A DNA stretch of 39,970 bases from Klebsormidium nitens (Eukaryota; Plantae; Klebsormidiophyceae): the NCBI GenBank assembly GCA_000708835.1, contig DF237684.1, forward strand, positions 1-39,970, in the 5' to 3' direction. Shown here one piece after another: positions 12,291-31,200 of the stretch (positions are counted from its first letter, which is position 1; the number at the start of each line of letters is the position of its first letter). The notes under the pieces are model-generated. The model saw only the letters and a program-made list of their open reading frames with translations, was not told the origin of the DNA and ran no database searches. Position numbers and translations under genes: made by a program.

Positions 12291-13078
12291 GGTTCCCCGG
12301 GAGCGAGTGACGAAGTGATGAGCAGTACTCGCGCCCTGAGACACGTGTTCCTTTGCGGCCACCTCAGAAGCCAACAAAAGGAGAGCCGGGCTTTTGGCGC
12401 TTCTTTCGCATATGTCGTTATTCAGTCTCATATGATGCGCGGCATGCGGGGCGCTGCATCGCCGCATGTCCAATGAATGCAATTTATTTCTGGTGTTTAC
12501 ATTGAGGACTCATGGCTGGCAGGTTCTCAGTATTCACATGTAGTGACGTCATGCCACGCAATCATATTCTCCGACCATATATTGACCCGTCACGCAGAGG
12601 GGCATCTCATGAGGCGGCGTGACCTTGATCTGCTGCAGTTCTTGAAAGGTAACCAGATACCGGTTCGCATAAACGGCTCAGTGCAGTTCATTCATGTAAT
12701 ACAAGCGTGGTCAAGGATCAACCTGTGGAAAATACTATCAGCCTAGCATGTCCCAGGTTGTAACTTGCATGCTATATGCGAATTGTAGCACTTCATTATG
12801 TAAGCTGAACTGAGCACATGCAATGCACATGCTTTCCTGCAAGGTGGAGGGCTATCACTCGCTACCTTTAGCTAGGAACACGCGGGCGCAGACTGACTAT
12901 CTTTGGCACAAGCTGCATTTCTTCGAAAAGGACTTGACTGTGCGTCATAGACCGAGATCTCTAATGACGGACAGACCGATCATTCTACTTGTGCAACCCA
13001 GGTAACGAGCTTGTCAATCCGTCATGTTCCAACATAAAACTTTCCCCATTTGTAATCAATTGGGCCCTGACAACCAGG

Positions 13079-13606
13079 CTAGAAGTACAATCTTGTCCTC
13101 TGCGTTATTGTTGCTCGACAGTGTGGACATTTGTTGAGAGATGGCGCACAGCCTGCACACGTCTACAAAGACAGGAAGAAGCATGGGTTCGGGAAATACT
13201 TTTGGTTGCGGAGGTGAGATGGATGGGTAGAACGTCTGACATGCACAGATCCAACGGACCACTCCAGTCAATCACAACTTCCTGGAGCATCGAATTGTGG
13301 AGTGAAGCACAGCCCACCAGATCTCGATAAGGGTAACAGTCTCTACTCTGTAATTCAAGTTGAGCTGATTTTCTCACTGCTTCCATAGGAGTTTGAACAG
13401 CACTCTCAGTGCGTTTGACGCCGGAGATTGTATGCGATGAGTGCCACTGAGCTCGCGCGGCGTTTGGGAACGAATGAGCCTTGAAAGCATTGCCCACAAT
13501 CGCAGCAACAGTCGTCTTAGATTGCAACTGTTCGTTTGAACATCCTTACCATATGCCCACACTGGAAGCTCATGTTGGCAACCTCAGAGAAGCAGATGCA
13601 GCAAGT
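13079..13606 (-). other. C-terminal RING-HC (C3HC4, RGLG/IAP/MGRN-type) zinc finger split over two exons
   Basis: Joining exons 13606-13550 and 13162-13079 gives C-x2-C-x10-C-x-H-x2-C-x2-C-x6-C-x2-C-R, followed by an RLYF* terminus like the RGLG-type RING tail. Confidence 0.9.
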
Positions 13607-16600
13607 CTGCAGAGAGCATCGTGAGAAGGCCGTAAGTCAACTAAGCTAAGCTACCCCTCAGCCGTTGTCAAATTTCGCTACAATGACCTCATGCTCTCTT
13701 TTGTTTGAAGAGTCCATATCGAACCAGAGTTGCCTCATCGACTCGTGCACCTAGCTGGCAAGGAAGCGTTCTGAATGACGAGTCAACGGCCCCTTCTCAC
13801 TGACTCTGGAAAAAATCGTCAGAATCTCATTCGAGGCTCCTTTCCGGGCATACTTGCTTACATAGCTCTTCTTGATCACTTCACAAGGGAGTTAAATTGG
13901 ACGAAATCAACGTGCAAAGTTTTCGCTTGGTGAGAATAAGATGCCAGACGAAGTGCGCCTTCAATCGGTACATGTGAGAGCGGTCTTTAAAAGCGATGGC
14001 AAGCAACTCACGTTCTCTATCCGGCCGTCGCTTGCAGTGCTCCTCCTTCGAAGGGGCCTGTTTCTGTCTCCCCCATCTTCGCTTAGCCCTGCTTCCATGC
14101 GGGGGCCACCACCGGGTCGATCGTCTAAGGGTTCCGACATCCTGAACGCTGGGTTCTGGTCGCGCCAATCCACACTGCCTGGCACTTCCGGCGCAGAAGG
14201 CAAGGTTTGTGCACTGTCTTGCGCTGACGTTTGCGTGGGGACTGCATCCTCGAAAGGCGAGCCACCTTCGGGACTGCGAATCAGACCGGCCGGTAGAGTC
14301 TGCTCCACGTGAGAGACCAGCTTGCGCCTGCAGAGGGCACGTGCGAATAGAACTCAGTCGGACGAGGAGCAGCATAGGAGATGTTGCATGCGAAGAGATG
14401 AGACGCTCCATTGCGTCACAGGAGGATAACCTTTACTGAAGCATCATCTCTTCCTCATGGACTGCCTCCCTCGAAGGACAGGCATAGCTATACACACTGA
14501 TGCTTATAAGCAGCTCGTCGTGGGTGCCACTCAAGTCTGTAAACGCTCTCATGTCGCCTGCTCTGCACTCGGCTCTACGGGCAAGTCTCACCGGTAGTCC
14601 TCCTCTAAGAGCTTGTGCAAGACGAATTCAAGCAGCTTCTGGTCCGTCAAGCCGAGTACTTCCGCTACTGTTGCAAGCCACGATGACACGGAGGGCTGGC
14701 TATCTCCCACAGCAAAATCGGCCGAGAAATCGGCCCTGAGCTTGTCAGCAATCGTTCCAGCTAGGATTGCCTTGTCGCGCTTCCGTAGGCACAGGCTCTG
14801 TGGGGAGAAAAGACTGCATCGCAAAATTTCTTATGAACATTCCAGGTGCCGTAGGCTTCACGGCCGGCACCTCCAATGCCGCACTTATGCCGTTTGACTG
14901 CCGCACACGTGCCGCATGGTGCCGCACCGTGCCCGTATTGCCGCAACAGCTGCCGCATGATGCGGGCATTGCATATGGTTGTCGGACGCTATCACGTCCG
15001 CGCCGTAGTTGGTGCCGGGCATGTTGTTGTGCGGCAGCCAATAGCCGTGCCGGCATGGTTGGCTGCCGTGACGGCTGGGAATGTGCCGCGTACAGTGCCG
15101 ATACCCTCTTGTGCCATAGCCGTGCCAGCATGGCCGGCTGCCGTGACGGTTGGGAACGTGCCGCGTACAGTGCCGGCACCGTCTCACAAGAGACCCCAGG
15201 TAGTAAAAAAGATGTGGAGCCAAAAAAAAATTCGAAGAAGCTTACCAGCGCGCACTTTACGATAGACAGGCCAATAGCGCTTCGCATCGTAAACTGTGCG
15301 CCAGCCGTACAAACCGAGAAAAGGAGCCTGCCGCATGTGAGANNNNNNNNNNNNNNNNNNNNNNNNNNNNNNNNNNNNNNNNNNNNNNNNNNNNNNNNNN
15401 NNNNNNNNNNNNNNNNNNNNNNNNNNNNNNNNNNNNNNNNNNNNNNNNNNNNNNNNNNNNNNNNNNNNNNNNNNNNNNNNNNNNNNNNNNNNNNNNNNNN
15501 NNNNNNNNNNNNNNNNNNNNNNNNNNNNNNNNNNNNNNNNNNNNNNNNNNNNNNNNNNNNNNNNNNNNNNNNNNNNNNNNNNNNNNNNNNNNNNNNNNNN
15601 NNNNNNNNNNNNNNNNNNNNNNNNNNNNNNNNNNNNNNNNNNNNNNNNNNNNNNNNNNNNNNNNNNNNNNNNNNNNNNNNNNNNNNNNNNNNNNNNNNNN
15701 NNNNNNNNNNNNNNNNNNNNNNNNNNNNNNNNNNNNNNNNNNNNNNNNNNNNNNNNNNNNNNNNNNNNNNNNNNNNNNNNNNNNNNNNNNNNNNNNNNNN
15801 NNNNNNNNNNNNNNNNNNNNNNNNNNNNNNNNNNNNNNNNNNNNNNNNNNNNNNNNNNNNNNNNNNNNCCCGCGTGTTGTGTCGCCAACCGGTCTTCTTT
15901 CAGTACAGTTCCGCGGTCGGTCCGGACGGTGCCGCACGGTCCATATACCTACGGTGTATGGTACATACCTACTTAGCCTACGGTATGTACCGTCCGGGCA
16001 ATCTGCTGGAAATTGAGCAATCCGCCGTCGATGATCGAATCGACGGTCGGAGTTAAAATGTCGGGCCTACCTAGATTCAAATTCAAAATTCGACGGTCAA
16101 CCACTCGGACTCACTCAGTGTACCTAGCCTAAACGCCTAGACTCGTCAGACTTAGATTCGACACATTGTAGCTGTAATTGGTCGCTAGCTAGGTAAGCCA
16201 TTGGGCGCCGCCTTGAAGAGCGCCATGGCGCAAGTCGTTTCAATCCACCTTTAGACTTTCGCGCAGTGCCACCCCGCAACGGCGTAGATTGCCCAGGTGC
16301 GTCGACAGAGGATTGGAGCACGTGCGGCGGGATTGCGGAAGGCCTGCGTGATGGATTAAGGAAGACAACAATCGAGGGTGAGACACAAGCCATACAAACC
16401 ATACTAGCTCGAACCAATTGATGCACTGATTGCTGTAATGAACTTTGTATGCAAAGCTGTGCAAGATTTGCCAAGCTGTGTAAGAGTTGCCATTTATCCT
16501 CTTTGTCAAGATTGCAACATCTGCTTATAGAAGTGTCTTTCACAAAGCAGAGTTGCAACTCGATTATAACTTGGGTTGTTGCAATTGATCACTTTGATTG

Positions 16601-19600
16601 CTTATATATTGACTGCCAATAATTGTACATTGCAGGACAACCATTGCCAATTGTAGACCTGCGTGAGGGATTAAGGAAGACAACAATCGAGGGTGAGACA
16701 CAAGCTATACAAGCCATACTAGCTCAGACCAATTGATGCACTGATCGCTGTAATGAACTTTGTATGCAAAGTTGTGCAAGATTTGCCAAGCTATGTAAGA
16801 GTTGCCATTTATCCTCTTTGTCAAATTTGCAACCTCTGCTTATAGAAGTGTCTTTCACAAAGCAGAGTTGCAACTCGATGATAACTTGGGTTGTTGCAAT
16901 TGATCACTTTGATTGCTTATATGTTGACTGCCAATGATTGTACATTGCAGGACAACCATTGCCAATTGTAGGCCTGCGTGATGGATTAAGGAAGACAACA
17001 ATCGACGGTGAGACACAAGCCATACAAGCCACACTAGCTCAGACTTGTCAAGCGTTGATGGTAGTATAGATGGATCTCAATAAGTTGATGTCTTGACCAA
17101 CCGGCGCGAGTGTTGGTGTTTTTCAACAAGGTTTGGCTGCTGGCGCATAAGTTACGCTAGCGAGGCATTAAGAAGGTTCCAGCGTAATGTGTGCGCAGGT
17201 AGTGTACTGGTCTAGGCTCCGAAGTATCATGAGGCTAGCTAGACTCAGTGGAAGCACCTAGGCTAGCTAGACTCAGTGAGCAGTAATCAGTGAGTTACCG
17301 AATTTTTCGCCGAAGTTGGACTCGAGAATCAAATTTGATGAGTCGACCGTCCGAGTACTGAAGTTGCGCACATTCTACGCTCACCACCCATTCAAGCATT
17401 CAAGGCTTTCAGCGTAAACTGTGCGCCGTGTGTAACGACGGTATTAAATGCCATGTCGTGCCGTGTCGACGCCGTACACGTAATGAGCAAACCGTACACA
17501 TGCCGTTGCGGCTACATGCCGGCCGAATTCATTGTACCGTGCTGATGCGTGCCTCGGACCCCACAATGCCGTACATGTGCCGGGTAGGTGTGCCGCGCTC
17601 GCCTTGTCGGCACTAGGACGGCTGCCTGGCGGCACCGACACCGCCGGACGGCACATTGCGGCACGTCGATGAGTGCCGGAGCGGCATACCATGACGGCAA
17701 GTGCCGCAACTGCCGCCGGCAGCTTGCGGCACCTGCGCGGCCCCCTCGAAATTTTGCGATGTGAACAAGGTCAAGAATAGGATGGCTGACTCCACTTTCA
17801 CTCCGTTAAACGAACGGGCCGTGGCCAAACAAGAGCCAAGAAGAGATCCTCTGAGATACACAGCTGCTTCAGTTCTGATGGCTTCATTGCACCTTCTGCT
17901 ATCGGATCCCTCTGGGATAGACTCTCAGCTTGAAGTGGCCCCCTTTGTGACGCAAAGGTTCTGAGGTGCCACTTGGAAACCTTCTGCAGCGTACCTCGAT
18001 CTCCTTGGCTCTTCTTGGTCCTTGGGACTCGTCGAAGGCCTTGGACAGCTTCTCGACTTCCTTGGTGTAAGGGAGCCCTTTCGACGACTCGAAATTCCAC
18101 AGATAGAGACCCAGCTCTTTTCGAAGAGCGTCGGCTAAGGGAAACTTCTTTCGATGCTTCCTATACTGCAAGCAGAGATGGCACGTCACGTGATAGCAGA
18201 TATAGGCTCCGGAACGATACATCTACGGCTCCTGATGGTCGTGTCTTCACACCAGCATAATAAGCTCAACATCGAAAGACCTCGCAGATGCAACGTCTCA
18301 TGCGCTTCAGCAGGGGACGTGCGAAGTACTTATCAGTGGTGGTCTACGGAGAGAGCTTCTCTAAGAGGTGGACAAGAAGAAGTGGCGTTGAGCCCATCTC
18401 ATCCTTATGTGCTGGCTGACAAAGGAGAGGAGTAGTGCAGTGACGTCTCGTGCCTTTTAGGCACTCCTCATGGTTGCTCTAAGATCTGGCGCGAGCTTAC
18501 ACTTGTGAGATACGAGTATGCTGTCAGCAGTCCAGAGATCATTGAAAGGGCAGCAGCGCCTCCACCACTCGCGATCGCCCACGTATATTTGAAGACCGAA
18601 GTCGCGGCTTGCTTTACACAGTCTTTGCTTGCAAGATTGGAACTTTGGCTGCAGTCCACTACGCTCCCGTTTGACCCTGCGCCGGTTGAGCCTGCAAGAG
18701 TTGCGTGCATTAATTGGGCACATTCTCCGAGTTTGCGCATATGCAGTTGATAAGTGGATCCAACCATTCCCTTCATTGCAGATGGGTATGGATTTGAAGC
18801 CACAAGCTAGCCGACCCAAAACAGAGTACAAACTGCGAAAAGCCTCTCTGTAGCATATGCCACCAGACTTGGACCCTTGCTCATCAGAACGAAACTGTGG
18901 ACAACAGTTGCAACACGACGCCTGCTTCGTGACAGGAGATTCACTTTAGCTGTCCCGAAGAAGCGGGCCTTTAAGGCAAAGAAGAGGACACGCAAGTCTG
19001 CATGGAAAGAAAAAGCAATCTAAGTTGCTTCGAGCTTCCGTTAGACTTCCCGGAAGGGAGACGAAGTACGAGTGCTTAGCAGTGAACAGTGCACTTTCAC
19101 GCACCTGTGTACGCGACTTGTGGGGGCGCTTGGACGGTGGTCACTTGGTGGGGCCCAAAGATCGACGGCAGGCTGAAGGTCGAGGCCTCGAGGGTGGCGC
19201 TAATATCCGAAACTGTAGCGGCTGACAGAGCCGAGCCCTGTCCGGGAAGTGGTACGGACACTGTTGTGACGATAACGCTCCCCTGCTCCACTCGTGAGAC
19301 CCGGACCTGAATAGGGGAGGCGATCGGCTCGGTGGCGCCCCTTGATGTCTCAGGAGATCAGTAGCATGGCCGGCCGGCTGAAGAAGCAATCTCCACTGTT
19401 GACCGTTCCAAAGTTTGGAACGAAACCTCGACTCTGAGTGCTCTTCAACGGTTGCGAAAGAGGACAAACTCGATTGTTCTCGAGAAGCAAAAGCTGTCGT
19501 TGACTCGGTCACTCTCCTAGTCTGCTGGCTGATAGAAGGACAGAAACGTGTTTCACACTCATGTTGCGTCCCGCTCGTGATGCAGTGAAGCTGGGCACGT

Positions 19601-22458
19601 ACCTGACCCGCTCTAAGCTGGAATGAGTCAGCCAGAGATGCGACGAGCTGCGCTTGCAGGGTGGTGTTGAAAGTGAGCAAGTTGAAGGCAGTGAGCCGGA
19701 GGACTACGGTGAGCGGATACACACAAGGGCACTCCATGTTGACGCCAAGAGTCTGGTCCGAGGGGCACGTGCAAGTGACTGCGAGAGGAAAGGAGGGCTG
19801 GCTGTTGCCGGACATTTCATTCCAAAGGAGCAATCGAAAGCTTCGCGCTCTCTGCACTCAAGGACGCTTGGCTCGACTTGCCTCCAGATATGACAGAGAC
19901 GTGTCTGGCAAATAATCTTCAACCGGTGCCTTGAGGGGTCCCCAGGCTCAAGACCCTGAGGGATTCTCGGGGAATCTCTTAGCTCCGAGTTTTAATGAGG
20001 TCTCTTGGCCATGTCAACCACAGAGGTACGCTCTTTATCCTTGAAGCAAGCTAGCTTTACAGGGAAGGATTTTCGCTGGCAACATAGTCAAGAGACACAC
20101 AAAAGCCCAATTTCGATTGTAAGAAAGGCAAGAGGTTTACCTGTATTGGGAGGCGCACTGGGCTTTGGTGGGCTGAGTGCAAGGGATGGGGAAGGAGATG
20201 GAGCAGGAGTCTCGACTGGGGGCTCTTCCACGGGTGGTGCCGATAATGGTGAGAGGTCCGTTGCATTTGGAGCGTAGGACGGGAGTGGGGAAGGTTGAGG
20301 CCGCACAGATCTAGATGGAGACGGTGAACTTATACGTGAAGAGGTGCTTGGTGAGAGGGAGAACGACGGTGAAGCTTCAAGGGAGGGACTAATTGCAAGA
20401 GAAGTGGAGGGCGAAGGGAGCGGCGAAGGCGACTGCGGACTGGTTTGCGAAGGACTTGGACTTCGTGGTGAAGACGCAGGAGAGGTTTGAGAAGGTGACG
20501 CAACAGGCGATGAGGACATGGATGGATCAGCTTGGAAAGTGGAAAGTGATGGACTTTGAGAGGGAGAGGGGGAAGTGGAGGGGCTAGGGGCCAAGCTTTG
20601 GGCCGGTGGTTGGGAACCTGAGGGCGATGGTGATGCGGATGTTGAAGGGGACGGCGAGAGGCTCTGCAAAGCTGAGGGGCTGAGAGAAGCAGACGGAGAC
20701 GAGGTCATCGATGGAGAGGGGCTCGTTAACGAAGAAGGGGAGGGAGATACTGAGACTGATGGCGATGGAGGTATCGACTGAGCTGGAGATCGGCTTGTCA
20801 TAGGAGAAGGTGAGGGGAAGGGAGTCGAGGAAGGAGATGCAGACCTTGACGGACTTGCCGAGAAAGAAGGCGAGGGCGAAAGGGAGGGGTAGGGGGAGGG
20901 GCTTATCGAAGGTGACGGAGATAAGGACATGGATGGAGAGGGATTGACGGATGAGGACGGAGATACGGAGATCGAAGGCGAAGGAGAGACTGATCGAGAG
21001 GAAGATGGGCTTGGGATCGAAGAAGGAGAAGGCGTCAGCGATGGGGACGGAGAGCTTGCTGGACTTGGTGAGGAGGAAGGAAAAGGCGAGCTCGAGGGAG
21101 AGGGCGACGGGGAAGAAGTTGTGACTGAGAGGGAGACGGAGATGCTGCGAAGAAGGAGAAACAGCCTCAGGTACAAGTACAGCTGTCAGAGAAGATGTTG
21201 GCTGACTTGTTGCTCCTGACAACGAGGTGTAAGGTGCCTTTTCTCAAGCACGAGATCAGAGTGGAAGCAGCTCTACTGGTTCGACGAGGCCACACCAGTG
21301 CCTAGGACCGATACTCGATCAAAGTTGGGTCAGAGTTCGAGAAGAAACGTAGCCACCAAAGCTACATGTCCTCTGAGAGCTGACGCCGTTGGTAATGGAG
21401 TGGGGGAACGAGCTGCTTGTTCAGCCATCGTCCCGGTGTTGGCAGGACCTTGACAGACATACTCACCAGCAAGTCTGAGGTAATAGTTGGTACCCAACGA
21501 GCGCATCAGCCCATGGGAAGGGGCTTGTTGCAAGGAGCAACACAAGTCCGGCCAATAGTTGGACGTCCAGAACGAGAAGCCAATACACGAGCTGAAAGAA
21601 AGGCACAGGTTAGCGCACGCGTCTGCAGAGGGCTGGTAATAACCGACTCTGTCTGATGTACACTCTTGAAGCCCGTCGAGTGCCATTTCGTAATTACCGA
21701 TATAGTCAGCATCCTTGTAGTTTTGGAAGCTGGTTACTCCCGGGAGGCCTGCGGAGAGATGAACTTTGCGCTTGAAGCTAAAGATGCTTCTGAGTCTCCC
21801 TGCCACGGAACTGCCGGGCGCGAAGGTAATATAGCTTTGACCTTGAGTCTGTGGCTACCGATCACAAAAGACAAATGATGTCCCCAAGGATCGCAATGTG
21901 CTGACACAGTAAGCTAAAGATCCTGTAAGCAAGAAACGATGTGCAGGTTGTGAAAGACCAGTTCAGCTCGACCTTAGGTGCAGCAGTCACTGGCACTGGC
22001 CAGGTTTCAGTCCTTCTCAATAGTGTTTCTACTATTCGCAAGCTTCCCTAGTTTGCAACTCTGGTAAGCTCACCGGATCTCCGAAGATATAGACTTGCAT
22101 CCGATCCTGTTGTGAAGCCACCGAAGGGCGCTTGCTTCAAGAAGCAGCAGTTAGGCAGGACTGAGTCTCCCGGCCACCACACGAACCCTATGCAAGTATC
22201 GAAATTGAAGCACACGGTCGCACAGCTATCCACAGATTGCTCGACATATCCGTCATCGCCTGGCCGACACCGGGTAGACTCATCCTTCCAAGGAACAGGA
22301 AGGTCCCGTGTGCCCGTAGCATCCGTTCCGTTGTAATAGATGAATCCAGGAGACACCTCTTGTGGCAGATTGCTAGTAGCAGGCTGGACGTTTGCAAGCA
22401 CCAGAACCAAGGCGAGCGCATAAAGCGTCCACCGAGGGACTTTAGTACGACTCTTCAT
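13079..22458 (-). CDS. Receptor-like single-pass membrane RING-HC E3 ubiquitin ligase (SP-PAN-PAN-Ser/Pro stalk-ALE2-like domain-TM-cytosolic-RING), 12 exons, ~1038 aa
   Basis: Exons 22458-22074, 21748-21467, 21124-20141, 19778-19603, 19306-19105, 18691-18501, 18165-17995, 14797-14592, 14327-14012, 13750-13688, 13606-13550 and 13162-13079. All introns are GT-AG and all phases are compatible; the total is 3117 nt with no internal stop. Signal peptide is MKSRTKVPRWTLYALALVLVLANVQPATS. An uncharged stretch WAIASGGGAAALSMISGLLTAYSYLTS is followed by YRKHRKK. The C-terminus is CCICFSEVANMSFQCGHMTCAGCAPSLNKCPHCRATITQRTRLYF*. Confidence 0.8.
15343..15868. other. Assembly gap (N run)
   Basis: Run of N inside the CMC-like element. 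Confidence 1.
16340..17045 (+). repeat. 315-bp tandem repeat, ~2.25 copies, inside the CMC-like element
   Basis: ag(g/a)cctgcgtga...gattaaggaagacaacaatcga starts at 16340, 16655 and 16970. Confidence 0.9.
19105..19778 (-). other. ALE2-like (extensin-like RLK) juxtamembrane ectodomain
   Basis: VTCTCPSDQ...CPCVYPLTVVLRL...LVASLADSFQLRAGQ|VRVSRV...VIVTTVSVP...SIFGPHQVTTV resembles the CxCVxPxxVxLxL...xQV...FGxxxV ectodomain of ALE2-type receptor kinases. Recognised by eye; no HMM was run. Confidence 0.6.
20141..21124 (-). repeat. Ser-Pro-rich extensin/pherophorin-like stalk exon (receptor-like RING gene)
   Basis: A 984-nt phase1-phase1 exon encodes imperfect (SP)n/SPSPS repeats (ORF 20088..21176). 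Confidence 0.9.
21467..22370 (-). other. Two PAN/Apple domains (exons 1-2 of the receptor-like RING gene)
   Basis: CATVCFNFDTCIGFVWWPGDSVLPNCCFLK and CANLCLSFSSCIGFSFWTSNYWPDLCCSLQ match the PAN/Apple CxxxCxxxxxCxxFxW...CxLK pattern. Confidence 0.8.
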
Positions 22459-23248
22459 GCCTCTACTTATAAGCAGCTGATCAGGACCGGGAGCTGAGCC
22501 ACCAAGGGCCCCTAGCTGCAACGGCCAGCTTTACTAACAGCAGGTTGTCAGGTGACGTGCCTTGATCCAATGGTTGGGTTGCCTAATCCGTGCCAGCTGC
22601 AAGCTGCAGCATCCCCATCATAAATACGAGTATGGATCCCCTGCATTGCCATGCAGTGCCTCCGGCAGTGCACGTGCCAGCTGAGGTTGCCGCTGAGGTT
22701 GCCGCATTTGCAACTCTGAGCGTATGTTGAGCTCCCTCCCCAACTTTGCTTGATCGTGAGTGCATTGTAGTTAGGTAAGCTGCAGGCTCGGGGAAGTAGG
22801 TAGAACCCAGATTGAATATTGTTGTCGATCACAGTCCTGATGTGAGCTGCTGCGCACTTCCTGGCAAAGGAGAAGCTACCTATGTCTAGTACGTATGCAG
22901 CTTACTTACTCAGCTGATCAGTTGTCATCCGCAACATCCCTGCAACAGTGCTTTCCAATCTTTTGCAAAAAGTGCAACATTTCTACCTTGAAGAGGATCG
23001 GCCAGCTTGGAACATTTGTGAACACAGAGACTCCTTCAAACCATTGGCTCAGCTTCCAAGCTAGGCCCTCAAAGACCAGTTCGCATGCGCGGCATCTAGG
23101 CTGGATCTCTCTCATGGTCAGAATTGTGTCAACAGGTGTACGTGTGTCAACAGGTGTACTGTGTGTCAGAAAGTGAGAGTAGCCAAAAGTGGCAGAATAG
23201 AGGAGACTGGCAACGCGCTCCACTTTAATGCCGACTTCACGCCTGCTT

Positions 23249-23308
23249 CTGGTCCGGCTGTGCGAGTCCCTTGACAGTCTGGTCCGGCTGTGCGAGTCCC
23301 TTGACAGT
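23249..23308 (+). repeat. Perfect 30-bp tandem duplication
   Basis: ctggtccggctgtgcgagtcccttgacagt occurs at 23249 and 23279. Confidence 0.9.
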
Positions 23309-24579
23309 CATCAAGAGTTGTACTCTCGGTTGTTATACCTATGAGAGAATCTAGGTACCGTCCTACAGCTGTCACCAACTTGCACATAATGCATCGAGGA
23401 GCGGGTACTGGTTAGATTTGCAACTGTATAACCGCCGTTCAGAAATCCCGAACCCGGCTCGCGAACTGAAAGATGCACGCGCGTGTTCAGCGCGCGCGCA
23501 GATCATCATGCTGCACTGGATCCTTCCGACAAATGTGCGCAACATAACCTTCCGAGTACCCACTCCTGCGCCCTCAACGTCAACATCTTTTGGACTCATG
23601 ATGGCTAAGAACATAGGATTGATGCACTCTGCAAGGCCTATATTTTGTTTTCGAGGCAGTAGGAACGAAACTCTTTGACGTACGTTTGGGGCATCTCTCC
23701 GCAAGAGATGCTGTGCCTTTAGGGAGCGAGTATCGACCAGCTTCTGTTCCCTGGTCTCTTCTTCCCAGCTAGATCCTGCAAAGCAGATTTCGATGCGTGG
23801 CACTAAGGCACTGAAGACGCTTCCTCATAAGAAGCCTGCCGCTAGAAAGCGCGATTACGTAAGGTTTTGCGGAGCAGATTTATAGACCGTGCACGTGACG
23901 CAGAGATAGCAGAGGGAGTTGATTGCTCAAGAAGGCGGTATCTCGTAGAGAAGGAGCAAAGAAGTTGCAAAGGAACGGCTGTTCATGAGGAAATACCTTC
24001 ACGATGCACGACAAATTACAACTTCTTGCCGGAGCAGCGAGTCTTTGGCTGAGTGCTTCACCTCTTTGAGTCAATGCTCGCGACTTCCTTGGCGGCTGCA
24101 TGTCCTCCAAAATACTTACACAACATTCATCAGCCCCGTTCTATCATAGTATGACGGGACAACAGGTATTTCGGTCTTCTTGGCTAAAATTAGTATCTGC
24201 GTTGTGCAGATCTATTCGCTTCCATGTTGGCTAGCTGTTCATAGCGGCGTGCGAATGCTCGATGCGCAAACGGGCTATACTACCTGATTGAAGCAGTGCA
24301 TCTCGTGCATCATCATGGTCGCTTCTTGACAAGGGTTGACGTTGTCAATGCATGCAAAGCAAGATTGGACGTTTGACGTGCAAAGATCAAGCAATGCTTC
24401 AATGAGTGTTTGACTCGCTTATCTGTAACTCCTGCTGTGTCTCTCGGATGAACGGCTCTACCGTCAGTAGCACGCGCCTACCGGGCCGCCAGCCTGCTTC
24501 GATACAAAATCAGTATCCTCCCTCTGTCACAGCTCAGGTTGTACCCTTACCGAATCTCCTCCTCCTGCTCTTTTGCATG

Positions 24580-25125
24580 TCAAGACAGAACGTTCGGAGG
24601 GCGTACGCTCCTGGACTTCGGTCTTCTTTCCCCTCCTTCCTTATAGCTCCTTGCTGTCCGGTTCGTGAATGCTTCTTGCTGGTGCCTTTCGACAGCGCCA
24701 TCTTTACCCGCTTCCTCCCAAGGCCACTTCTGCCCCTCAAAACCGCCCGGGTGATTACCCCGGCCGCAGCCAGCGTCCTGTGGAAGCGGCGAGTAAAATG
24801 TGCTCCCTGCCCGGGGAAAGCAAGCACGCGCATCCTGGCTAGTACATCTCGTCAAACAGAAGATGGCCCAACAGCCCAGGCAGGTTCGGAGACTGAAAGA
24901 AGCGCTTCTCTTCTTTTCCAGCATACGCCTTTCTAGCCTCCTTTGTGCCTCATCTCCAGGGAATTGCGCACGGCGCGGCGGGGTAGTTTTTCCTGCCTCC
25001 CGCTTTATTGCATCAACAAGAGCAGCTTCCTCAGTTGCTTGTAAAGGAGTTGGCTTGCCCTATTCCTCCCCCGCTTTGATTTGAGTGGCTGTTTTTGCCT
25101 GACCCGTTTCGAAAACGACAGCTGT
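24580..25125 (-). pseudogene. Coding-like segment of unknown identity between the Hog and receptor-like RING genes
   Basis: One frame is nearly open for ~180 codons (QAKTATQIKAGEE*GKPTPLQATEEAALVDAIKREAG...RRPKSRS) with one TAG. No domain recognised. Confidence 0.25.
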
Positions 25126-25295
25126 CAATCAAACCAAGAGCCCTCCGCGGGAGTGCTCACTCTTTCGCCCCCTGATGTTTTTCCCCATCTCAACGGCTAA
25201 GAGCAGCACAGCATCGCCAGTCCCTCACGGAGCGCCACGTGGCAGAACCACGTGAGCACACGGGTCCCATTTTCCAGGCTCTTCCCCGCTGCATT

Positions 25296-28200
25296 TCAAG
25301 CAAAAGCCGCGAAGAAGCGGCGCAGAATCCACTCTAGGGCTGCTCGCGGCACCAGGGCCGCGACCAACCGGGCAGGCAGCATCGCACGGTGGAAAGCCCC
25401 GAGGGACGGAGGGAAGGCGGTGGTGAACTGGAGAGCGGCCACCCGGTCGACTAGGATGGTCCCGCTCACAGTTTTGGGGCTGTACAACCCGGCAGGACGG
25501 ATGACGTCACGCTGACGACCGTGCTGGGCGCGAGCGAGGTTTGCCTTCCGGGGCCTTTGGACGTCCAGATAACGTCGCCAGGTTTTACGTCTGCGAAGGG
25601 CTTGATGGTCGCTTGCTGAATTGAGAGGGTAGATCGAGGGTCCGAGACCAGGATGTAATGGTTCGGAGTACCGCTGATGCTTACACCCGCGTCGGCTTCG
25701 AGGGAGACGTAAGTGGCCTGCAAAAGAGTTGAAGGATTGGTGTTTGATGTCCAGCAGTGGCATGAAGAGAAAGACTGATCTCTGCCACAAACAAGGGACA
25801 TCCCTTCTTGGTTCTTTGCAGTGCACGACAGCAAAGTCGTAGAAACTTGTCCGCCAGCTCTAGTTGATCTGGGGTAAGAGGCAAGTTTTGATCCCCCAAT
25901 GCTCAATGGTCCCGACAAAAAAGCATCATGAGTTGAGCATATGAAGCCTAGGGGCGGTGATGTGTCCGCCTCAAATTCACGCTTGCACTTTTGTTGTTTT
26001 CAAGTGTTTGATTGTTAGGCAAGCAGCGCCAATCTACGGGCCGGATGTTCAGCGCACAAAGGCACGTGGAATAAAGCGGAATCCTTTTGACGGTTCTGAT
26101 CATATCCGCAAACGAACGGCAACCGTTTGACTGCCTTTGCTGAGGACGACAACTTAAGTCCTAAAACGGATGAGAAGTCTTCTTTAACTAGAAAACCAGT
26201 CACAAGGTGCCTTCTACCCCTTTCCTTTCATTCGCGTGCTTTGTTTTCCTTTGAACACTTTTCTGTCAATTCTTTATTCAACTTATTCTTTACTTTCTTA
26301 GCACAATTCCGGCGGCTAAAGTCGTGCGACTTACCGTTTGGTTCAGGTGGTGCGTGAACCAGTACACGGGCTGTACAAACAGCTCGCCAGAGCTCGGGTC
26401 AAAGACAAGAACGGGATCGCCCAAATGGACGTCCGCCATTCTTTTCCAGCCGCCGTCCGCTAACGTCACAAAAGCGTCAGCGGGAAAGCAGCCACCCTTT
26501 TTGACCGGAAGGGGAGGTGCGGGGGGCGGCGGTGGCGGCGGGGCCGGGGGCGGGTTTGCGAAGCTCTCTAACGGGGGGTCAAAAAAGGGTGGTTCCGGGG
26601 GAGGAGTTTGCGGCGGCGGCGGCGGCGGCTGTGGGCGCTTGGAGGGCGAAGGCCCAAGCTGCGGGGGAGGGGGTTTACCGATAACGGACCAGGTTGGGTC
26701 CGAAACTACCTCTGTTTGCGCGCTAACGCCCCTCTCTTGCAGCGCGGTTGAGAAGGACCCTGAGTCGACAGACTCCGCGATTGCTGCGGCCTCTGAGGAG
26801 ACTGCGGCCGCGTTAGCTGCGGTTATGCTGATAACCACCTGCACACGAGCGCTAACCGTAGGGGTTTCGGTTACTTGAACGTCCGTCGGCGATAGACCGG
26901 AGGACTCGAAGGCAGCGCTGACTTTGCCGCTAGAAGCGCATCTCCAACGGCCTGCGCCACTTCCTTCGCTTGAGACCCGTCTGTACAGAGGATGCTGAAC
27001 AAAACCCTCAACCCTGGGGTTTGAAGCAACCCGCGTCGCCTCCCGCTCTCCGAGAAGCCGTCTATGGAAACGGACGAAGGATCGACATTTAGAGCGTACG
27101 ACACCCCATCGATGAACGCCTCTCTCCCGCCCCAGTCGGTCCAATCGTCGGGCGACACGTTGCCCAACACGCAGGAATGGTTAACGGCGAAGGTTATGCC
27201 GCTAATGACTACAGACCCCGGGTCAAGCCCGTTGGCTTCGGCAAGCGAGAGCGCGATGTCGTCGTTCTGGATCAGGTTCGCGTCCTCGAGGCTGGTTAAG
27301 GAAACCCCGACGTTAATCGACGCTGCGACAGCCGCGGCCGCGCTTGGGGAAGGCGACTGAGAGGGAGAGGGAGAAGGGGAGGGGCTGGCCTTTGGGCTTC
27401 GGCTGGGTCTCACTGAGGCGCGCGGGCTTGGCGAGGGGCTCTCTACCGGGCTCGAAGGAGTGCTCGGTGAGGGGCTCGGGGAAGGGCTTGAGACTGAGCT
27501 AGAAGAAGAGGGGCTTGGCACCGGGGAGAGAGACGGGCTTTCTACCGGGCTAGGAGAAGCGCTCGGGGAAGGGCTCGGGGCGGAGCTAGACGTCGGGCTT
27601 GGCACCGGGGAGAGAGACGGACTTTCTACCGGGCTAGGAGAAGTGCTTGGGGAAGTTTGAGGCGCAGCGCTTGAGGAAGGGCTCGGTTGAGGGCTCGAAG
27701 AAGCACTCGGGGAAGGACTACCGGGCGGAGAGGAAGCAACTGGGCTTGGCGACGGACTCGGGGAAGGGCCTTCGCTTTGACCTGCACTTGTTGACGGGCT
27801 ATCGGAAGGACGCATGTAGGGGCTGCTAGAAGGGCTCGCAATTGGGTCGGGGGATGCGCTCGCAATTGTGCTGGGAGATGGGCTGGCAACCGGGCTGCTG
27901 GAAGGGCTAGCAACCGGGCTGCTGGAAGGGCTAATAACCGGGCTGATGGAAGGGCTAGCAACCGGGCTACCGGAGGAGCTGGCAAACGGGTTTCTCGGGG
28001 GACTCGCAAACGGGCTGCTGGAAGGGCTGGCAAACGGGTTGCTCGGGACACTCGCAAAGGGGCTGCTAGAAGAGCTCGGAGTTGCGCTGCTTGAGGGGCT
28101 GGCAGCCGGACTGTTTGAGGGCCTAGGAAGCGGGCTGCTAGAGGGGCTTAAAAATCGGCTTGGGGAGGGACTGCTTGAGGGACTAGCAGAAGAGCTAGCC

Positions 28201-31200
28201 ACCGGGCTAGGAGATGGAACTGGGCTCTGCGAAGGGCTGGCGGTAGCACTGTTACCGAGCACCGAAACTTGGACGGCCGTTTCTGCGACGCGCCCGAAGT
28301 TGTCCGTCACAGAGAGCTTGAACGTGTAGTTGCCGGCTACCAAGCCTGACGCTCTCGCGGCCGGCAGGGTCGCATTCGAAAGCACTGAGGCGGGCCCCGA
28401 CACTTGCTCCCATGCATAGCAACTTGCCCGGGGCGGATCCCCGACCGCCCCCAGGAGCTTCCTCCGGGCCCTCGTGCACTGCCCGCGGTCCTCGCGAAGG
28501 GGTATGCAGCCACCATTATAATCATTATCAATGCAATACTTGCAACCGGGCGCATTGTAGCAAGCCCGCTCGCTGTTGGGACACTCGCAGAAGCAGTTCC
28601 ACCCGAGGTTGTTGTAGTTGCAGTTGAAGCTCTCCCAGCCAAACTGGCACGAGCACTTGTTGTTAGCCAGGCACGTGCCCCGGTTGTTGCAATTATAAGA
28701 GCACACGAAGGGGCTGCGTGAAGGGCTCGGTGAAGGGCTCTTGCTCGGGCTAGGAGAAACCGAGGCTTTGGGGCTGGGGCTTCTGCTTGGGGCAGGGCTA
28801 GGGCTTGGAACCGGGCTGGTGCTTGGAACCGGGCTGGCACTTAGACTCGGCTGTGGGTTTGAGCTGGCCCCCGGGGAAGGGCCCGGGGTGGAACTTGGGC
28901 TTGGCTGTGGGCTTGAGCTGGGCCCCGGGGATGGGCCCGGGGTGGGAGCCGGGGTAGCAGGCGTGCAATCTTTGCCGACGTATGAGTTGGCGCACAGAAG
29001 GACGAATGAGTTTCCGCTCGGGGCGCAGGACAGCTGACCGGGAGACGAGACGTTAAGGCAGGGGCTTGGAGGCAGTTCACACCGGGCCCCGCTGTAACCA
29101 GCCTTGCAGCGGCAGGCTGCGGCATTGACGGTGGTAATGCACTCTCCATTGGGGCCGCAGTCGACTCCGAAACACGTGGCACACTTGGACGAGCGCGACC
29201 CGTCGAGGAGGACCGAGGTTTCGGACGTCAACGTGATCTGTGCCGCAGGGACGCGCGCACGCGGGCCGGGCGCGGCAGGGCACGTGCTGCTCTCGTTGCA
29301 TTGCTGGGCCAATAAGCTCCAGGGTTGAGAATTGGTTGGGGTTGCAAGGCAGNNNNNNNNNNNNNNNNNNNNNNNNNNNNNNNNNNNNNNNNNNNNNNNN
29401 NNNNNNNNNNNNNNNNNNNNNNNNNNNNNNNNNNNNNNNNNNNNNNNNNNNNNNNNNNNNNNNNNNNNNNNNNNNNNNNNNNNNNNNNNNNNNNNNNNNN
29501 NNNNNNNNNNNNNNNNNNNNNNNNNNNNNNNNNNNNNNNNNNNNNNNNNNNNNNNNNNNNNNNNNNNNNNNNNNNNNNNNNNNNNNNNNNNNNNNNNNNN
29601 NNNNNNNNNNNNNNNNNNNNNNNNNNNNNNNNNNNNNNNNNNNNNNNNNNNNNNNNNNNNNNNNNNNNNNNNNNNNNNNNNNNNNNNNNNNNNNNNNNNN
29701 NNNNNNNNNNNNNNNNNNNNNNNNNNNNNNNNNNNNNNNNNNNNNNNNNNNNNNNNNNNNNNNNNNNNNNNNNNNNNNNNNNNNNNNNNNNNNNNNNNNN
29801 NNNNNNNNNNNNNNNNNNNNNNNNNNNNNNNNNNNNNNNNNNNNNNNNNNNNNNNNNNNNNNNNNNNNNNNNNNNNNNNNNNNNNNNNNNGTCTCGTTCC
29901 CTTTGAGGCACGTGCAGGTCGACTCGCACCAGCCGCAGCCGGCCCTGAGCGCGCAGTCGCGACACGTGGCGGCGTTTGAGAGGCTGCACGGGTCAGGGCA
30001 CGTGGCTGCGACGGTCGCCCAAGCGTACGGGAGCATCGCTGCGTCCGTGGGCTGAGAGCAGACACCGACGTACGGGCCCTGGTCGTCTCCAGGCCGACAC
30101 GCAGAATCGGTGTCACACCAACCGCAGCCTGCGGTTTCCGCACAGGCATGGCAGTCAAGAATCTGGGCGCAGTCGGAGCGAAGTATCGTCTGGCCAAGGG
30201 AAGGAGCGTCGAATCCAAAGTGGGCGATTGCTAACTCAGAGCCCTGCGCGAGGACTTGCACCGAGCCGACCCAGTTGGGAGCCCCGGTCACTTCGCACTG
30301 GAAGATTGCCCCGAGGTCCAGTATTTGGAGCCGCTGGTCGTAGTAAGACTGCCCGGAAGGAACAGCAGCGATCAGGAAGGGGAAGGACGCGCCAAAGGTG
30401 CCGACAACTGTTACGGAAGTTGCGGACGGCAAAGTAGAAGAGCTCCCAGCGCGGGAAACCGTTGTGACGAGGACCGTGTAGTTAGCCAAACCGCGGATGA
30501 TAACCGGACCGGTAGTGAGGGCCGTCTTTGTCCCGTTGGCGTCGCTGGATTGCAGCTGCACAGAAGGTGAAGCATTTGAGACGGGAATACAACAAACCCT
30601 GAAACCCTGAAACCCTAGATCCTCAAGAAGCTCGTCAACCTACGAGAAAGCTTGTTTGAAGGCGGTTCACAGCGACACTAAGAAGTCAATATTCCTTGTG
30701 AGAAGCTGCTTTCTCTACAACAAGTAAAGAAAAGGCGTACTGCAGAAAACGACAGGCTTCGATCAACAGATTCCGAACATGAGGAGTTGAGCCGCAAAAG
30801 CGAAAAGAGAACTTTCTGCCAAGGCTCGTTGAGAGTGTTTGACTTTCGGGAGCAAAGTTACCTGCAAAGACAGCAGTCCCGAGCGGATCTTGTTTGGAAT
30901 CTGAACGGTGAAGCTGCCGCTATTGGGCAGCGCATCGATTGGAACGCTGATCTGGGGCCCGTCATCCAACGGGTCGATGGAAGCCAGCTGGACGGTTGAC
31001 GGTGAAGCAGCCGACCGAGACATCCGCAATTTGACGCGCCCGTATTGGATGCCCCCAGTCCACGTGACATTGTACGTTTGGCCCGCCGTCCACACGTCCA
31101 GCGAAGCTGGTTGGCTAATGAACGGATCTACGTTTAGGCATGGGTCCACGTTGCAGGCCTCCTGAACAACACGTGGCACAAAATTATGAGCGGCCCATCG

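Follow-up and report, generated by a model that had tools for sequence, protein, structure and literature searches.

We analyzed the complete scaffold DF237684.1 (39,970 bp, the window in the following) of Klebsormidium nitens NIES-2285, assembly GCA_000708835.1, and focused on a minus-strand locus where a receptor-like ectodomain appears to be encoded together with a RING finger. Rebuilding the locus from the sequence resulted in 11 exons running from 22458 to 13079, all with AG acceptors and GT donors (Table 1). The ten GT-AG junctions have compatible phases and join the exons into 3054 nt, corresponding to 1017 codons plus TAG with no internal stop. The first-pass annotation of this DNA had proposed 12 exons and about 1038 aa; both numbers had to be lowered, but its start (22458), its stop (13079) and the in-phase joining were retained, and the junctions that it had named (19105/18691, 18501/18165 and 17995/14797) are the same in our rebuilt model. 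If the exons are joined, they do encode the architecture suggested at that time: a secreted ectodomain of PAN, Ser-Pro and ALE2_N modules, one candidate transmembrane segment and a C-terminal RING-HC finger, with no kinase. With moderate confidence, we regard the locus as a single gene of K. nitens, which extends and corrects the public model KFL_007350020 and would encode a 1017-aa type-I membrane protein. We are more confident that the core, from ALE2_N over the transmembrane segment to the RING, belongs to one gene. The product is probably a real, lineage-specific receptor-like transmembrane E3 ligase, its function being predicted from sequence.

Structure of the predicted receptor-RING gene

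Every intron of the receptor-RING gene has a pyrimidine-rich 3' end, and the nine introns other than intron 7 are 264–413 nt long. The exons of the second PAN-like repeat and of the Ser-Pro stalk are both symmetric phase 1-1 modules. Symmetric exons of this kind are characteristic of shuffled extracellular modules, and they hint at the way in which the ectodomain may have been put together. An Rfam search of the whole window gave no match.

Two of the joins needed particular attention. Exons 1–3 are assigned to the gene because no signal peptide, as required for the ectodomain, is found downstream of exon 3 (the in-frame ATGs upstream of the ALE2_N part are not followed by a hydrophobic leader), and because the phase 1-1 exons 2 and 3 connect to an acceptor of exon 4 that is likewise in phase 1. 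The join of exons 7 and 8 across the large intron 7 is based on three properties of exon 8. An in-frame ATG is missing from it, which calls for a coding exon further upstream; together with exon 9 (206 + 316 nt, both required) it brings the RING into frame; and its GC content is higher at third than at second codon positions (GC3 0.66 vs GC2 0.39), which is coding-like and similar to exon 7. In addition, its acceptor is a consensus polypyrimidine-AG in phase 0, fitting the phase-0 donor of exon 7.

Table 1 Exons of the receptor-RING gene, its largest intron and the transposon therein (positions within the window).
Feature	Start	End	Strand	Description
Exon 1	22074	22458	-	ATG, signal peptide (residues 1-29), PAN-like repeat 1 with six Cys; donor phase 1
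Exon 2	21467	21748	-	PAN-like repeat 2; symmetric phase 1-1
Exon 3	20141	21124	-	328-aa (Ser-Pro)n stalk, rod resembling hydroxyproline-rich glycoproteins (HRGP); phase 1-1
Exon 4	19603	19778	-	First half of ALE2_N (E 0.0037 with exon 4 alone); phase-1 acceptor
Exon 5	19105	19306	-	Second half of ALE2_N
Exon 6	18501	18691	-	Extracellular juxtamembrane segment and transmembrane candidate (residues 713-738, Gly/Ala/Ser-rich)
Exon 7	17995	18165	-	Polybasic stop-transfer YRKHRKK and beginning of the cytosolic part; phase 0-0
Intron 7	14798	17994	-	3197 nt; bridged by the public model at the same sites
Transposon	14817	17761		Non-autonomous element with terminal inverted repeats (TIR), 2.9 kb, inside intron 7
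Exon 8	14592	14797	-	Cytosolic segment, 206 nt; phase 0-2
Exon 9	14012	14327	-	Acidic, Pro/Gly-rich linker, 316 nt; basic run RRRS at its end, directly before the RING
Exon 10	13550	13606	-	First half of the RING (C-x2-C ... C-x-H)
Exon 11	13079	13162	-	Second half of the RING (C-x2-C-x6-C-x2-C), tail ending Tyr-Phe, TAG; absent from the public model

An IAP-like RING finger at the C-terminus

A regular expression applied to the spliced model located the RING at residues 973–1005 with the C3HC4 spacing C-x2-C-x10-C-x-H-x2-C-x2-C-x6-C-x2-C. All eight ligands and the C-terminal tail are preserved, and the fifth ligand is Cys instead of His, which places the finger in the RING-HC class. In the Pfam profile zf-C3HC4_3 (PF13920), exon 10 covers positions 2–24 (18 bits) and exon 11 positions 25–48 (22 bits, E 1.4e-4). 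Scored separately, each half stays below the gathering score of 27; the halves are contiguous in the profile, and their simple sum is about 40 bits. Intron 10 divides the RING exactly between profile positions 24 and 25, and this exact split together with the IAP-like character of exon 11 confirms junction 10/11.

Compared with sequences in the PDB, exon 11 matched cIAP2 (E 4.7e-5) as well as BIRC7, cIAP1 and XIAP, and the match extends into their tails; these matches include the BIRC7 structure 4AUQ. The PDB matches listed (E up to 10) contained no MGRN1 or RGLG RING, and Pfam searches of the public protein and the exons found neither the N-terminal region of MGRN1/LOG2 nor the vWA/copine domain of RGLG. 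As judged from its sequence, the RING is IAP-like and lies at the extreme C-terminus. The terminal RING-HC that had been proposed is thereby retained, but its nearest relatives in the PDB are IAP-type RINGs and not the RGLG/MGRN type to which it had been attributed.

Composition of the ectodomain

According to sequence and hydropathy, the first 29 residues form a signal peptide: a basic n-region comes first, then a hydrophobic core, and A-x-S, with small residues at -3 and -1, stands ahead of the likely cut. It is followed by two paralogous cysteine modules on adjacent phase-1 exons, which align with each other at 34% identity (E 9e-16), with six aligned Cys in both. The best Pfam matches of the single exons were PAN_4 for exon 1 (E 0.26) and PAN_4 (E 0.15) and PAN_1 (E 0.19) for exon 2, and neither a PDB sequence search nor a profile of the two repeats matched a PAN or apple chain. 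A protein-language-model search of the ESM Atlas returned PAN clusters only (score 0.95, 173–176 shared features), and the ten best named matches of the feature search for the repeats were all PAN; we treat this test as a lead. Altogether, the two N-terminal modules are supported as PAN-like, below curated thresholds. The two PAN/Apple domains reported in the first pass can thus be kept as six-Cys repeats with a PAN-like embedding, but they do not reach a Pfam gathering score.

The stalk of about 330 aa that had been described was found with 328 aa, of which 40% are Ser and 27% Pro. It contains 60 SP dipeptides, a single SPP and no SPPP. Since extensins carry Ser-Pro3-5 repeats, an identity as extensin in the strict sense is ruled out, and (Ser-Pro)n is the appropriate label. 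In the Ser-Pro frame of exon 3 (frame A), the wobble positions are spread nearly evenly over the four bases while positions 1 and 2 are fixed, which indicates that this is the selected frame. The frame used by the public annotation (frame B) has the invariant C of frame A as its third base.

The ALE2-like domain, in contrast to the PAN-like repeats, exceeds its Pfam threshold, in line with the earlier proposal: in the public 436-aa protein, ALE2_N (PF23180) scores 28.8 bits vs a gathering score of 27 and covers profile positions 12–117 of 120. The match is unbroken over the junction of exons 4 and 5, which confirms this junction. The predicted model of the ALE2_N part stored in the ESM Atlas aligns with models of ALE2_N + kinase proteins at TM-scores of 0.75–0.79. 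A language-model feature search with residues 1–112 of the public model (19737–19105) placed ALE2_N near animal SEA domains (score 0.84, 32 matches). On the basis of this model, the result suggests a SEA-like juxtamembrane fold for ALE2_N.

Candidate membrane segment and cytosolic part

The candidate transmembrane segment has the Cys-rich, glycosylatable part on one side and the zinc finger on the other, and it lies in a region of 30 uncharged residues followed by YRKHRKK. It is the top segment on two of three scales, with 1.69 on the Goldman-Engelman-Steitz scale (GES; threshold 1.0) and a Hessa-type sum of +3.4. On the Kyte-Doolittle scale it reaches 1.4 (threshold 1.6), just below a strand-like stretch of ALE2_N at 1.5. 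A single membrane span at residues 713–738 is plausible but marginal. Of the proposed transmembrane segment with a subsequent YRKHRKK, the motif and a candidate segment are present, but the hydrophobicity is marginal on two of three scales.

The cytosolic part between this segment and the RING comprises about 230 aa. Pfam assigned no family to exons 7–9, no Pkinase or PK_Tyr_Ser-Thr match was found in the cytosolic exons and the public protein at E up to 1, and searches of the public protein and the exons revealed no family besides ALE2_N and the RING (with PAN below thresholds). A SAM-like domain considered in exon 8 was dropped, as it has no Pfam support. In an exhaustive search of exon 8 against 1.84 billion representatives, the sole match was its own public model, besides three chance matches to repeat proteins. 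Word-based searches with the public protein and with its ALE2_N part returned only the public protein, and exon 1 returned nothing. As far as can be read from the sequence, the cytosolic linker is an orphan without detectable relatives.

A transposon and an assembly gap in intron 7

A 2.9-kb transposon within the gene had already been noted in the first pass, and the TIR element indeed lies inside intron 7. Its termini are perfect inverted repeats (14/14 nt; 0.01 expected by chance). GTGCCGCA-type subterminal motifs are enriched at both ends and absent from the flanks, and about 115 nt of subterminal sequence of the two ends align in inverted orientation. A clear target-site duplication was not found, only a 2-nt TG on either side. 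The interior contains a 315-bp tandem repeat (16343–17044, 2.2 copies), and short TGCCGCA-rich tandem arrays with periods of 21–22 nt and 75 nt are found at 14876–15184, inside the left subterminal region. A contig of RNA run X2 on 17344–17563 matches at 95–99% with an 8-nt deletion, which indicates that another copy of the transposon is transcribed somewhere.

The transposon, and hence intron 7, also includes a run of N (15343–15868) that is crossed by no reading frame. The transposon ends flank this gap, one per side and in inverted orientation, and such paired ends look like one element interrupted by unread bases. Physical continuity over the gap is, from the sequence, supported but not proven. 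After subtraction of the transposon, about 252 nt of intron 7 remain. The exon 8 acceptor is located 19 nt downstream of one transposon end; its polypyrimidine tract and AG are intact.

Public annotation and the neighboring Hog-like gene

The public protein (GAQ91152.1 / KFL_007350020, 436 aa) corresponds to residues 565–990 of the 1017-aa product and is identical there. Its gene model joins exons 4–10 exactly as in our reconstruction, over transposon and gap and including 17995/14797. Public models of K. nitens were produced by Augustus, and SPALN was used to map assembled transcripts to the scaffolds (PMC4052687). The model is a second algorithm giving the same exon chain, not a transcript proof. 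Its start codon, the ATG at 19737, falls within ALE2_N (profile position 12), a signal peptide is missing, and the frame runs through the donor of exon 10 to a stop, whereby the RING is lost. Because this read-through destroys the RING, UniRef names the protein after ALE2_N only. Consequently, the transposon was not the reason why the gene had been missed, as had been assumed: the public annotation bridged it and failed at intron 10, at the start codon and at exons 1–3. KFL_007350020 is truncated at both ends and the public models at the locus look wrong, and this mis-annotation hides the architecture from databases.

The upstream neighbor is a Hog-like gene, annotated as 2778 aa with a span of 20584–29737 and with Notch, TSP1, PKD and Hint matches. 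Its annotated end at 20584 is the stop of a non-Ser-Pro frame inside exon 3; the path of the public model through exons 1–3 was inferred only from this end coordinate. The Hint module (within 25296–27144) is complete in three pieces (profile positions 8–63, 64–143 and 136–181), and about 19 codons separate its end from a stop at 25296; from this stop, it is 2.8 kb to the ATG at 22458. With a complete Hint module and a nearby stop, the annotated 3' extension of the Hog-like gene looks like a merge of two genes. Further upstream, a second N gap breaks a 1115-codon open frame of the Hog-like gene (26871–30218). This frame contains long Ser-Pro runs that prefer AGC for Ser, vs the TCN-rich stalk of the receptor-RING gene.

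RNA evidence

One RNA run contained 7% of the words sampled from 17995–19778. Contigs of four runs (X1, X2, X4 and X6) were placed on 12950–18949. In run X1, a 183-nt contig covers 18501–18677 in exon 6; its alignment with the genome ends precisely at the predicted donor 18501, and the six letters beyond it do not follow the intron. This contig end is consistent with splicing at 18501. In the runs examined, the receptor-RING gene is weakly expressed, if at all.

One gene or more

Several observations weigh against a single gene encoding the complete receptor-like protein. The stretch 12900–14800 occurs in none of the listed RNA runs, and the four runs placed on 12950–18949 provided no contig over any junction and none on exons 7–11. 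The annotated span of the Hog-like gene covers exons 1–3. The PAN-like repeats reach only 11.8–12.6 bits in Pfam (PAN_4/PAN_1/PAN_3, E 0.15–0.47) vs cut-offs of 21–27, and the hydrophobicity of the membrane segment is clear on the GES scale only. The transposon end so close to the exon 8 acceptor may weaken splicing. As no homologues were found, conservation cannot confirm the joins or the function, and single-sequence AlphaFold predictions were unusable both for PAN-like repeat 1 (predicted local distance difference test, pLDDT, 36.9) and for the transmembrane segment with exons 7–8 (pLDDT 41.4).

Among the alternatives, we would give most weight, while still considering it unlikely, to a gene restricted to the core of exons 4–11, with exons 1–3 being derived from another transcript. 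These exons could belong to a separate secreted PAN and Ser-Pro wall glycoprotein, ending at the read-through stop at 20088, or to the 3' end of the Hog-like gene. Such a boundary would agree with the public models, of which the upstream one ends at 20584 and KFL_007350020 starts at 19737. Junctions 2/3 and 3/4 are supported by splice consensus and phase alone, read-through of the exon 3 donor leads to a stop after 17 codons, and no RNA links exon 3 to exon 4. However, the core would then be left without a signal peptide and begin inside ALE2_N, and the public 3' end uses frame B, with the invariant C of frame A in its third position. Moreover, the Hint module and the stop at 25296 form a natural end of the Hog-like gene, and the ATG at 22458, being immediately followed by a signal peptide, marks the start of a gene. 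Rather improbable, in our view, is a split at the transposon intron into two genes, namely a receptor-like protein without output domain (PAN, stalk, ALE2_N, transmembrane segment and a short tail) and a small cytosolic RING protein starting from a Met in exon 9. Read-through at donor 17995 gives a stop after 32 codons, exon 9 offers in-frame Met codons, no RNA spans 17995/14797, and the gapped 3.2-kb intron is the weakest link of the gene. On the other side, exon 8 is open, has no in-frame ATG, shows the coding-like composition and carries the acceptor that fits the donor of exon 7; Augustus made the same join, and without the transposon the intron has a length typical for this gene.

Slightly less probable still is that the architecture is real and the allele silent or decaying and now devoid of function, after a recent transposon insertion into a lineage-restricted, recently assembled chimeric gene. 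The position of the transposon end 19 nt from the acceptor, the near absence of RNA contigs and the lack of detectable homologues would fit this explanation. However, neither a frameshift nor a stop interrupts the 1017 codons, all splice sites are canonical, the eight RING ligands and the tail are preserved, and so are the polypyrimidine tract and AG of exon 8. Finally, the gap could result from a scaffolding error between two unrelated loci, both of them terminating in a member of one transposon family. Assemblers do break in repeat DNA such as that around the gap, and the contig of run X2 with its 8-nt deletion attests a further copy of the family. Still, we consider this highly improbable, since the ends are inverted relative to each other, as they should be, and share a perfect 14-nt TIR, the flanking half-introns sum to a normal intron, and the exon phases fit over the join.

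Proposed function and mechanism

Plant transmembrane signaling is viewed almost entirely in terms of receptor kinases, and the lineage of Klebsormidium is the earliest-branching one among streptophytes from which canonical receptor kinases have been reported. A function in cell-wall sensing with ubiquitination as output, as put forward in the first-pass annotation, is purely inferential; nevertheless, the one-gene reading of the locus allows a mechanism to be outlined. The rod would be hydroxylated and glycosylated and extend into the wall, where the PAN modules might bind a wall glycan or glycoprotein. Engagement of the wall or of a ligand could then cluster or tether the protein via its ectodomain. 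IAP-type RINGs work as dimers via their C-terminal tails, so that ectodomain clustering would pair two RINGs. The paired RINGs might dimerize and discharge ubiquitin from E2~ubiquitin onto plasma-membrane or cortical substrates. This scheme would follow the logic of receptor kinases but have ubiquitination for its output, and it corresponds to what has been described for receptor-like ubiquitin ligases (bioRxiv 10.1101/2020.05.25.113944). We propose tentatively, and with considerable doubt, that the Klebsormidium lineage also wired an extensin/ALE2-type ectodomain directly to a dimerization-dependent IAP-like RING, resulting in a receptor ubiquitin ligase that would be switched on when ligand or wall cluster it.

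If this is true, the plant lineage experimented at its base with ubiquitination, beside phosphorylation, as a primary output across the membrane, and the shuffling of receptor ectodomains to other catalytic outputs took place early in plant evolution. The protein would also be a simple and testable model for ubiquitination that is activated by clustering where wall and membrane meet. In any case, the locus represents a correction to the public annotation.

Comparison with known systems

ALE2 has been listed as a member of the Extensin class (PMC10868138), and ALE2-N has been equated with the 'Xiao' family of metaRLK 2.0 (PMC13174206). Like receptor-like kinases of the ALE2/extensin type, the K. 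nitens protein combines a Pro/Ser-rich region, ALE2_N, a single candidate transmembrane segment and a basic stop-transfer sequence. It differs from them in having a RING and no kinase, two extra N-terminal PAN modules, and (SP)n instead of SPPPP. With the IAP E3 ligases (cIAP1/2, XIAP and BIRC7) it shares the C3HC4 spacing, the position of the RING at the extreme C-terminus and the conserved second half and tail. Unlike these, it contains no BIR domains, and its RING is tethered to a predicted membrane-spanning receptor-like protein.

Receptor-like transmembrane E3 ligases are few and important, with ZNRF3/RNF43 acting in Wnt and MEGF8-MGRN1 in Hedgehog signaling. ZNRF3/RNF43 and the plant RMR proteins combine a protease-associated (PA) ectodomain with a RING-H2. 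From these PA-TM-RING proteins (RMR, RNF43/ZNRF3 and GRAIL), the K. nitens protein is distinguished by a RING-HC and by giving no PA match in Pfam. ATLs are short proteins with a GLD motif. Grapevine ATL RING-H2 ligases with GUB_WAK_bind or WAK_assoc domains are known, namely VviATL144/146 (PMC5133618). These combine, like the predicted K. nitens protein, a wall-binding ectodomain module of receptor kinases with a membrane anchor and a RING. They carry a RING-H2, however, are unrelated in sequence and lack PAN, HRGP rod and ALE2_N. A chlorophyte cluster of the ESM Atlas, automatically named 'DUF8241 / EGF_Teneurin / zf-C3HC4_3', likewise joins an extracellular-type module to a C-terminal zf-C3HC4_3 RING. 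Its extracellular-type modules are different, and with a feature score of 0.59 and a comparison by name only it is a lead, not a relative.

As ATLs with WAK-type domains and receptor-like ubiquitin ligases have already been described, the concept behind the architecture, which the first-pass annotation had not recognized, is not a novel one. Membrane E3 ligases with receptor-type ectodomains are a known concept; the combination of PAN, Ser-Pro, ALE2_N and RING was not seen in our searches. The receptor-like ubiquitin ligases described comprise ZNRF3/RNF43, MEGF8-MGRN1, ATRN-MGRN1 and GDU1-LOG2 (bioRxiv 10.1101/2020.05.25.113944), and the K. nitens protein resembles them as a predicted single-pass membrane protein whose ectodomain is coupled to a cytosolic RING. 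In the MEGF8, ATRN and GDU1 systems, the RING-HC ligase is recruited non-covalently (bioRxiv 10.1101/2020.05.25.113944). In the predicted K. nitens protein, by contrast, the RING-HC is fused directly to an ectodomain of the plant receptor-like kinase type within one polypeptide.

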